Shown here: in pieces, positions 16,026 to 16,337 of the stretch
Position numbering within the stretch: position 1 is the stretch's first letter
Layout of the letters: every line of letters starts with the position of its first letter
Source: Mobula hypostoma
Lineage: Eukaryota
Direction of reading: 5' to 3'
Length of the DNA stretch: 64,000 nucleotides
NCBI RefSeq assembly: GCF_963921235.1
Contig: NC_086101.1
Coordinates: 13,454,001-13,518,000 of the forward strand
Position numbers and translations under genes: made by a program
The notes under the pieces: generated by a model
Seen by the model: the letters and a program-made list of their open reading frames with translations, nothing else
Database searches by the model: none
Told to the model about the DNA's origin: nothing

Positions 16026-16337
16026 TCAACCGCCGAAACCATAAAGGGTTCGCCCCTGACGTTTCAGCGCGTAGACCACATCCAGGGCCGTGATAGTCCT
16101 GCGCTTGGCATGTTCTGTGTAGGTGACCGAATCCCTGATGACGTTCTCCAAGAAAACTTTCAGTACACCTCGCATTTCCTCGTAAATGAGGCCAGAGATG
16201 CGTTTAACGCCACCTCTCCGAGCCAGGCGGCGGATAGCCGGCTTCGTGATCCCCTGAATATTATCTCGGAGGACTTTACGGTGCCGCTTGGCACCTCCTT
16301 TCCCCAGACCCTTTCCTCCTTTACCTCTGCCAGTCAT
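16026..16337 (-). CDS. H4: Histone H4 variant (S1T, T54M, A69S, K79R, V81I, M84L)
   Basis: Full-length 103-aa H4 ORF with stem-loop and H4 promoter element; an adjacent in-frame ATG at 16340 is an alternative start. Confidence 0.93.

Follow-up and report, generated by a model that had tools for sequence, protein, structure and literature searches.

The window analysed here is a 64,000-nucleotide stretch of the genome of the devil ray Mobula hypostoma. On its minus strand, at positions 16026..16337, lies the coding sequence (CDS) of a histone H4 paralogue, the focal gene, which runs uninterrupted over 103 codons up to its stop codon and encodes T1, M54, S69, R79, I81 and L84. As the canonical reference we used the H4 genes of two sawfish loci (L010/L011) together with many PDB chains. 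Compared with these, the reverse-strand translation of 16026-16337 differs from canonical vertebrate H4 by exactly S1T, T54M, A69S, K79R, V81I and M84L, so the original prediction, which had claimed these six substitutions in an intact frame, was right on both counts. The best PDB match was 4uuz_B (98/103 identical over residues 1-103, E 2.7e-60). Both a full-length H4 sequence (103 aa) and the histone fold were found, as judged from the matches to PDB H4 chains, and the Pfam histone-fold families CENP-T_C and TAF also exceeded their cut-offs on this protein. Among the 82 H4 cores recovered by the homologue search, its combination of residues was unique: T1 and S69 are common there, L84 and R79 are present, and M54 occurs in one further case.

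An extra in-frame ATG (16338..16340, minus strand) lies immediately upstream of the CDS, giving the ATG-ATG context ATGATGACT at 16340-16335; no difference at 16338-16340 was reported in the DNA contig of the sister species. The context of the first ATG is weak, with U at -3, and that of the second is better, with A at -3; the N-terminus may be either Met-Met-Thr, if the first ATG is used, or Thr. According to the depth table, the gene occupies a single-copy segment (15764..16542) with high-copy repeats at both ends. These very high-copy repeats, at 15600-15760 and 16543-16665, adjoin the ~780-bp H4 segment on either side and reach a summed contig depth of ~1e5 to 2e6 in the DNA runs of two related organisms, A and E.

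Downstream of the CDS, on the same strand, a histone 3' stem-loop region was detected with Rfam Histone3 (15956..16000), the stem-loop proper being GGCTCT-TTTT-AGAGCC at 15980-15995, with a perfect 6-bp stem. The stem-loop that had been predicted is thus present: it scored 33.2 bits (E 3.7e-08), 0.8 bit short of the gathering score of 34, and folded at -10.1 kcal/mol with a z of -4.2 against shuffles. The sub-threshold score is no sign of decay, since the clearly conserved second H4 gene of the window (51913-52224) scored lower still with the same model, at 30.2 bits. The 3' flank of the focal stem-loop reads AUAUACC in place of ACCCA. Further on, 15 nt past the stem, a purine run AAAAGGGC (15957..15964, minus strand) is a candidate histone downstream element with a presumed function; its counterpart in the family of the second H4 gene, AAAAGA, lies 16 nt after the stem.

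The focal gene sits in a cluster of variant histone genes, a set that skates and sharks also have in linkage. Besides it, the window contains an arginine-rich H1, two H1-like genes, a 129-aa H2A variant, a broken H2A, an H2B-like gene, and an H4 gene of the T54V/A69S type (V54/S69 H4). The 129-aa H2A variant (40619-41008, plus strand; C-terminal tail [10 protein letters not shown]) is 96-98% identical among devil ray, skate and shark (L013 2657-3046, L015 694-1083). One of its motifs reads AMRIG in the devil ray, AERVG in the shark and AERIG in the skate (Glu41 to Met). A broken copy of this gene, with two frame changes and 70-78% identity to the intact one, was found at 45112-45451 on the plus strand. 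In the divergent H2B-like gene (22464-22824, plus strand), a single frameshift near 22669-22676 divides the sequence between two reading frames relative to a 121-aa skate H2B (L014 18714-19079); this is a pseudogene or else an error of assembly. The V54/S69 H4, which we consider the parent type, lies at 51913..52224 on the plus strand with its stem-loop at 52253-52298. Sharks and the window agree in gene order, the 129-aa H2A variant being followed after ~10 kb by the H4 and then by an H1-like gene on the opposite strand. This company of non-standard histones (arginine-rich H1, H1-like genes, 129-aa H2A and V54/S69 H4), conserved in skates and sharks, is one point in favour of the reading of the original prediction, in which the focal gene is a specialised H4 variant, germline or embryonic for example, in which M54, R79 and L84, together with T1, would have been fixed for a distinct function. 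On the whole of the evidence we regard such a specialisation as unlikely.

We then looked at the V54/S69 H4 itself, using the window copy (51913-52224) and further loci (L001-L005, L012-L016). The exact protein was found on 23 contigs from at least 10 elasmobranch assemblies. It is this neighbour, and not the focal protein, that the 23 contigs encode; the exact focal protein was found on a single 199-Mb contig of one assembly only (GCA_963921235.1). Between the window V54/S69 gene and three skate and two shark loci there were no amino-acid differences, and the proportion of synonymous differences was 0.58-0.83, which corresponds to saturation. The family has its own promoter, in which CACGTGA is followed by TTCTTCACCCAGGTCCGC (the CACCCAGGTCCGC element) and, 8-9 nt further on, by TATAA, as well as its own stem-loop type, GGTTCT/AGAACC. 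The main histone clusters of the sawfish (H1, H2A, H3 and H4; L010/L011) carry canonical T54/A69 H4 with a GGCTCT stem and a different promoter, with CT repeats and GGTCGGGG. This indicates that a ray lineage has canonical H4 and that elasmobranchs also keep V54/S69 H4 in a second cluster, the canonical form having been read in sawfish and the V54/S69 form in devil ray, skates and sharks. An exact look-up of the canonical H4 protein returned matches only in unrelated animals. Its sequence conservation gives V54/S69 H4 the appearance of a vertebrate H4 variant of deep conservation. It is apparently undescribed, as our literature search found nothing on an H4 variant in elasmobranchs or cartilaginous fish. 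An H3 gene beside an Amblyraja V54/S69 H4 (L002 7970-8380) differs from the sawfish main-cluster H3 by V71A, V89I and S96C, and the second cluster may have its own H3 too.

The upstream region of the focal gene aligns with that of the V54/S69 family. A CCAGGTCCGC element at 16428..16437 (minus strand) is homologous to the family CACCCAGGTCCGC, with CACCAGGTCCGC as the matching stretch, and contains at 16429-16434 the GGTCCG element that had been predicted. The element CACC(C)AGGTCCGC is shared, and the distance from element to cap site resembles that of the family. The cap-site motif TCGGTCATTTCTC (16376..16388, minus strand) is a 13-mer that recurs unchanged at 51876-51888, as the cap-site motif of the other H4 gene in the window. 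The focal promoter thus retains the GGTCCGC block, its spacing and an identical cap site, while TATA and CACGTG are gone: the family TATAAAAG has become TACGAAAG (16412..16419, minus strand), which aligns with the family TATA box (GGTATAAAAG), and the CACGTG element is missing. Judging from this alignment, the focal gene has lost two promoter elements that rank among the most conserved of the family. A TATTAA hexamer (16389..16394, minus strand), ending 1 nt upstream of the cap-site motif, could substitute for TATA with a more downstream start. The mutated TATA box and CACGTG, the repeats that close in on both sides and the upstream ATG that changes the N-terminus would all suit a pseudogene in waiting, that is, a gene whose effective expression or translation was recently lost and which carries no disabling mutation yet; the neighbouring H2B-like and H2A copies are already frameshifted. 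Against it, the stem-loop and the candidate downstream element are intact, and the focal stem differs from the family GGTTCT by a paired change, C-G for T-A. We consider this outcome somewhat unlikely.

Promoter homology, S69 and location lead us to assign the focal gene to the V54/S69 lineage. The protein has one residue of the V54/S69 pair, S69, the other being Met rather than Val, and V54M takes a single base change (GTG to ATG). Descent from V54/S69 H4 leaves the focal gene with five changes of its own: S1T, V54M, K79R, V81I and M84L. The coding sequence adds little here, since trees of the CDS, with support of 57/62 at the focal gene and nucleotide identities all within 78-82%, cannot place it among the batoid copies because synonymous sites are saturated. 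As the stem also reads GGCTCT, the assignment rests on the promoter, S69 and the location. The same GGCTCT/AGAGCC stem, found in canonical sawfish H4 and unlike the family GGTTCT, would be explained if a canonical main-cluster H4 gene had moved here and gained S69 by convergence, and the focal CDS is very slightly closer to sawfish canonical H4 (81.6-81.9% identity) than to V54/S69 copies (78-81%). These identities all lie at the saturation floor and so carry no signal on origin. Since, in addition, the promoter aligns with the V54/S69 family and not with the canonical one (CT repeats, GGTCGGGG), and both the cap-site 13-mer and S69 are common to the focal gene and its V54/S69 neighbour, we hold a main-cluster origin to be very improbable. 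The original prediction had measured the gene against an invariant vertebrate H4. The six differences are real, but that baseline makes the gene itself look more divergent than it is, since its ancestry lies in the separate V54/S69 H4 lineage of elasmobranchs. It had also left out the second ATG, the presence of A69S and an altered residue 54 in the neighbouring H4 type, the mutated TATA, and the fact that V81I is private to this species.

To follow the focal gene in related species, contigs of four public runs were aligned to 15600-16800. Organism A, the sister species, has about half of the sampled 31-mer words, indicating that it is ~2% diverged. Its DNA run gave one 894-nt single-copy contig (15706-16603) with an intact CDS and four CDS differences: two synonymous, at T96 and S69, and two replacements, I81 to V and V43 to I. 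In a third species, organism B, a contig covering 16032-16198 is intact over the covered part, has V81 and the synonymous state of organism A at S69, and shows R67 to K, a weak call made from one contig at a depth of 2.6. Run X19 of organism E had no contig on the single-copy segment, a gap that proves nothing. M54, S69, R79 and L84 are therefore common to the three species, and V81I is private to the window species. As read from these contigs, each lineage appears to have one replacement of its own: the window species has I81, the sister species I43 and the third, probably, K67. The original prediction had named an orthologue search and dN/dS as checks. The search succeeded in part: two related species keep M54/S69/R79/L84, yet protein look-ups and the homologue search found no orthologue outside the devil-ray group, and the exact protein occurs in a single assembly. 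Because the homologue search gathers every H4 into a single cluster at 90% identity (7160 members), close orthologues could not be picked out in it; it did bring out the gene models of skate T1 proteins. For a specialised variant, the four residues common to three species are a favourable point, whereas the restriction of the exact protein to one assembly and its variation among close species (I81/V81, V43/I43, R67/K67) are not what a function fixed in this way would lead one to expect.

The selective history of the gene was then examined. Between the focal gene and the V54/S69 copy of the window there are 5 replacements for a pS of 0.63 and a dS of ~1.4, giving a dN/dS near 0.03-0.05. On these figures, long-term purifying selection on the focal gene is strong, since neutral decay over a dS of ~1.4 would have broken the frame. 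All seven replacements (7/7) have a BLOSUM62 score of at least +1, a class to which only 26-30% of the possible non-synonymous mutations of the CDS belong. Under random mutation, such conservativeness has P ~1e-4 for all seven and P ~0.02 for the three recent ones. The recent picture is different. Between the two closest species, CDS divergence was 1.28% versus 1.37% in the flanks, and four CDS changes were observed between sister species, where freedom of the synonymous sites alone would predict 1.1 (P=0.025). The ratio of non-synonymous to synonymous changes was 3:2 on recent branches versus 4:50 on old ones (Fisher P 0.01-0.05), the recent counts being tiny and compatible with neutrality as much as with relaxed selection. 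We read these comparisons as purifying selection that is now relaxed, not absent. The earlier claim of selection rather than decay is right for the greater part of the gene's history, with an ORF intact in at least two species, five replacements against near-saturated synonymous sites, replacements that are all conservative, and probable transcription in relatives. It is weakened for the recent past, as the protein is not fixed among close relatives and recent coding divergence equals that of the flanks. In the same way, the long-term dN/dS bears out the claim, and the recent CDS rate, no slower than that of the flanks, weakens it. The equal divergence of CDS and flanks between sister species speaks for a pseudogene in waiting and against a specialised variant, for which the loss of conserved promoter elements is a further difficulty. 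Conversely, the conservative nature of all the changes, two of them in the nucleosome-surface loop 78-81, suits a specialised variant. A pseudogene in waiting has to contend with an ORF intact in two species, an intact covered part in the third, and three recent replacements that are all conservative.

Concerning expression, the runs available were guessed to be RNA and not recorded as such, and they consist of assembled contigs, which carry no ends, strand, level or tissue. Two small RNA-like runs contained the orthologue (~115 million letters of contigs each, the longest record being ~17 kb). In that of organism A, a contig covered 16014-16305 at a depth of 7.6, with the same four differences as the DNA of that species, and in that of organism B a contig covered 16032-16198 at a depth of 2.6. 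In both runs, depth was zero in the unique flanks 15764-16009 and 16338-16501. The CDS of organism A stood ~70-fold above the single-copy DNA depth expected there (~0.1, scaled from its DNA run), as expected of a transcript. In organism B, other H4 contigs over the conserved N-terminal codons reached depths of 229-668, so that the variant, at ~1%, is a minor H4 species in that run. Finally, no focal 31-mer words were present in three RNA-like runs of the window species, nor in two of organism A. The CDS-only contigs in guessed-RNA runs suggest low expression of the orthologue in the relatives. They count against a pseudogene in waiting, in favour of which stands the lack of words in the three runs of the same species. 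The presence of the CDS in only some RNA-like runs would fit the tissue-restricted expression of a specialised variant, but a depth of ~1% of the other H4 contigs in one run does not favour it.

Altogether, these results point to a real, lineage-restricted H4 paralogue, which by its sequence would be a derived member of the V54/S69 lineage under relaxed constraint. We give a probability of about one half to its being a minor H4 isoform that is expressed at a low level, is largely redundant and evolves under such relaxed constraint. In the sequence of events that we propose, an intronless H4 gene with a stem-loop, presumably of the replication type, would have been duplicated in devil rays from the elasmobranch V54/S69 H4 within the variant-only cluster, and would have been long retained as a working nucleosomal H4. 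Conservative changes would then have come about at the start of helix alpha-2 (M54), in loop L2 (R79), in helix alpha-3 (L84) and possibly at T1. The gene would now be a minor, redundant isoform on which purifying selection is relaxed but present, with each related species fixing its own conservative replacement. The data show the sequence, its homology, the orthologues and the pattern of selection; transcription, translation and incorporation of the focal H4 into nucleosomes, and any effect on its modification, we infer from them. The protein should form nucleosomes as H4 does. NAA40 acetylates H4 via its SGRG N-terminus, and single deviations impair this (PMC12265263). The enzyme should act less well on a tail that begins with TGRG or, with translation from the first ATG, with MMTGRG. 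The nucleosomal LRS surface, which is sensitive to a loss of positive charge, includes H4 residues 78-81 (PMC2587916); K79R, which preserves charge, and V81I, which is conservative, would fall in this surface. A more far-reaching proposal is that elasmobranchs have a second, variant-only histone set with its own V54/S69 H4, whose protein is frozen across sharks, skates and a devil ray while the main clusters of a ray encode canonical H4, and which would be the first deeply conserved H4 sequence variant of vertebrates. The focal gene would then have branched off from it and taken on a new function in one tissue, for instance the germline, its N-terminus and L2/alpha-3 surface having been altered. 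We put it forward tentatively, as rather unlikely.

Several known H4 proteins can be compared with the focal gene. [quoted passage not shown] Like it, the ray gene belongs to a histone cluster and is a divergent H4 paralogue confined to one lineage, with low expression, suggested in the case of the ray. Human H4G is 85% identical to H4, truncated at the C-terminus and forms no stable nucleosomes in vitro, whereas the ray protein is 94% identical, full length and changed only conservatively. Canonical vertebrate H4, as read in the sawfish (L010/L011), has the same length of 103 aa, 97/103 identical residues, the same fold and the same GGCTCT stem-loop type, and differs from the focal gene by the six substitutions, by its promoter architecture and by its genomic cluster. 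Drosophila-type H4 (PDB 4uuz_B) has a natural TGRGKGG N-terminus, T1 being the normal state of insect-type H4, but unlike the focal gene it has T54, A69, K79, V81 and M84.

Among skates, the T1/V54/S69 'histone H4-like' protein (Amblyraja radiata XP_032903235.1; also Leucoraja and Rhinoraja; genes at L006 10154-10465, L007 10151-10462 and L008/L009 10001-10312) likewise has Thr1 on an S69 background, and unlike the focal gene it keeps V54, K79, V81 and M84. The skate gene also lies in the variant cluster, beside an H1-like gene, and the Rhinoraja copy is within 10 kb of an arginine-rich H1, as the focal gene is. In Rhinoraja two such T1 genes are found ~300 kb apart, and two of the skate T1 genes are annotated with spurious N-terminal extensions of ~50 residues. 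The skate T1 genes group with the S1 copies of skates (90-93% nucleotide identity) and not with the focal gene (78-79%), and S1T in the devil ray and in skates may be convergent.

Finally, the focal gene can be set beside the V54/S69 H4. Both have S69, the CACC(C)AGGTCCGC element, an intronless structure, a stem-loop 3' end and a place in the same variant-histone cluster, and the cap-site 13-mer is identical in the Mobula copy. The focal gene is distinguished by T1, M54, R79, I81 and L84, by the loss of TATA and CACGTG, by a GGCTCT instead of a GGTTCT stem, and by its lack of conservation beyond devil rays. H4 is the most conserved histone, and the seven tolerated replacements in fold and tail over three related species amount to a small natural mutational scan of this otherwise frozen protein. 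More important than the focal gene itself is its parent, the V54/S69 H4, which elasmobranchs have conserved in a cluster devoted to variant histones. Should one cell type make use of this variant set, elasmobranchs would provide a tractable system for studying a nucleosome that is alternative in all its parts, including H4.
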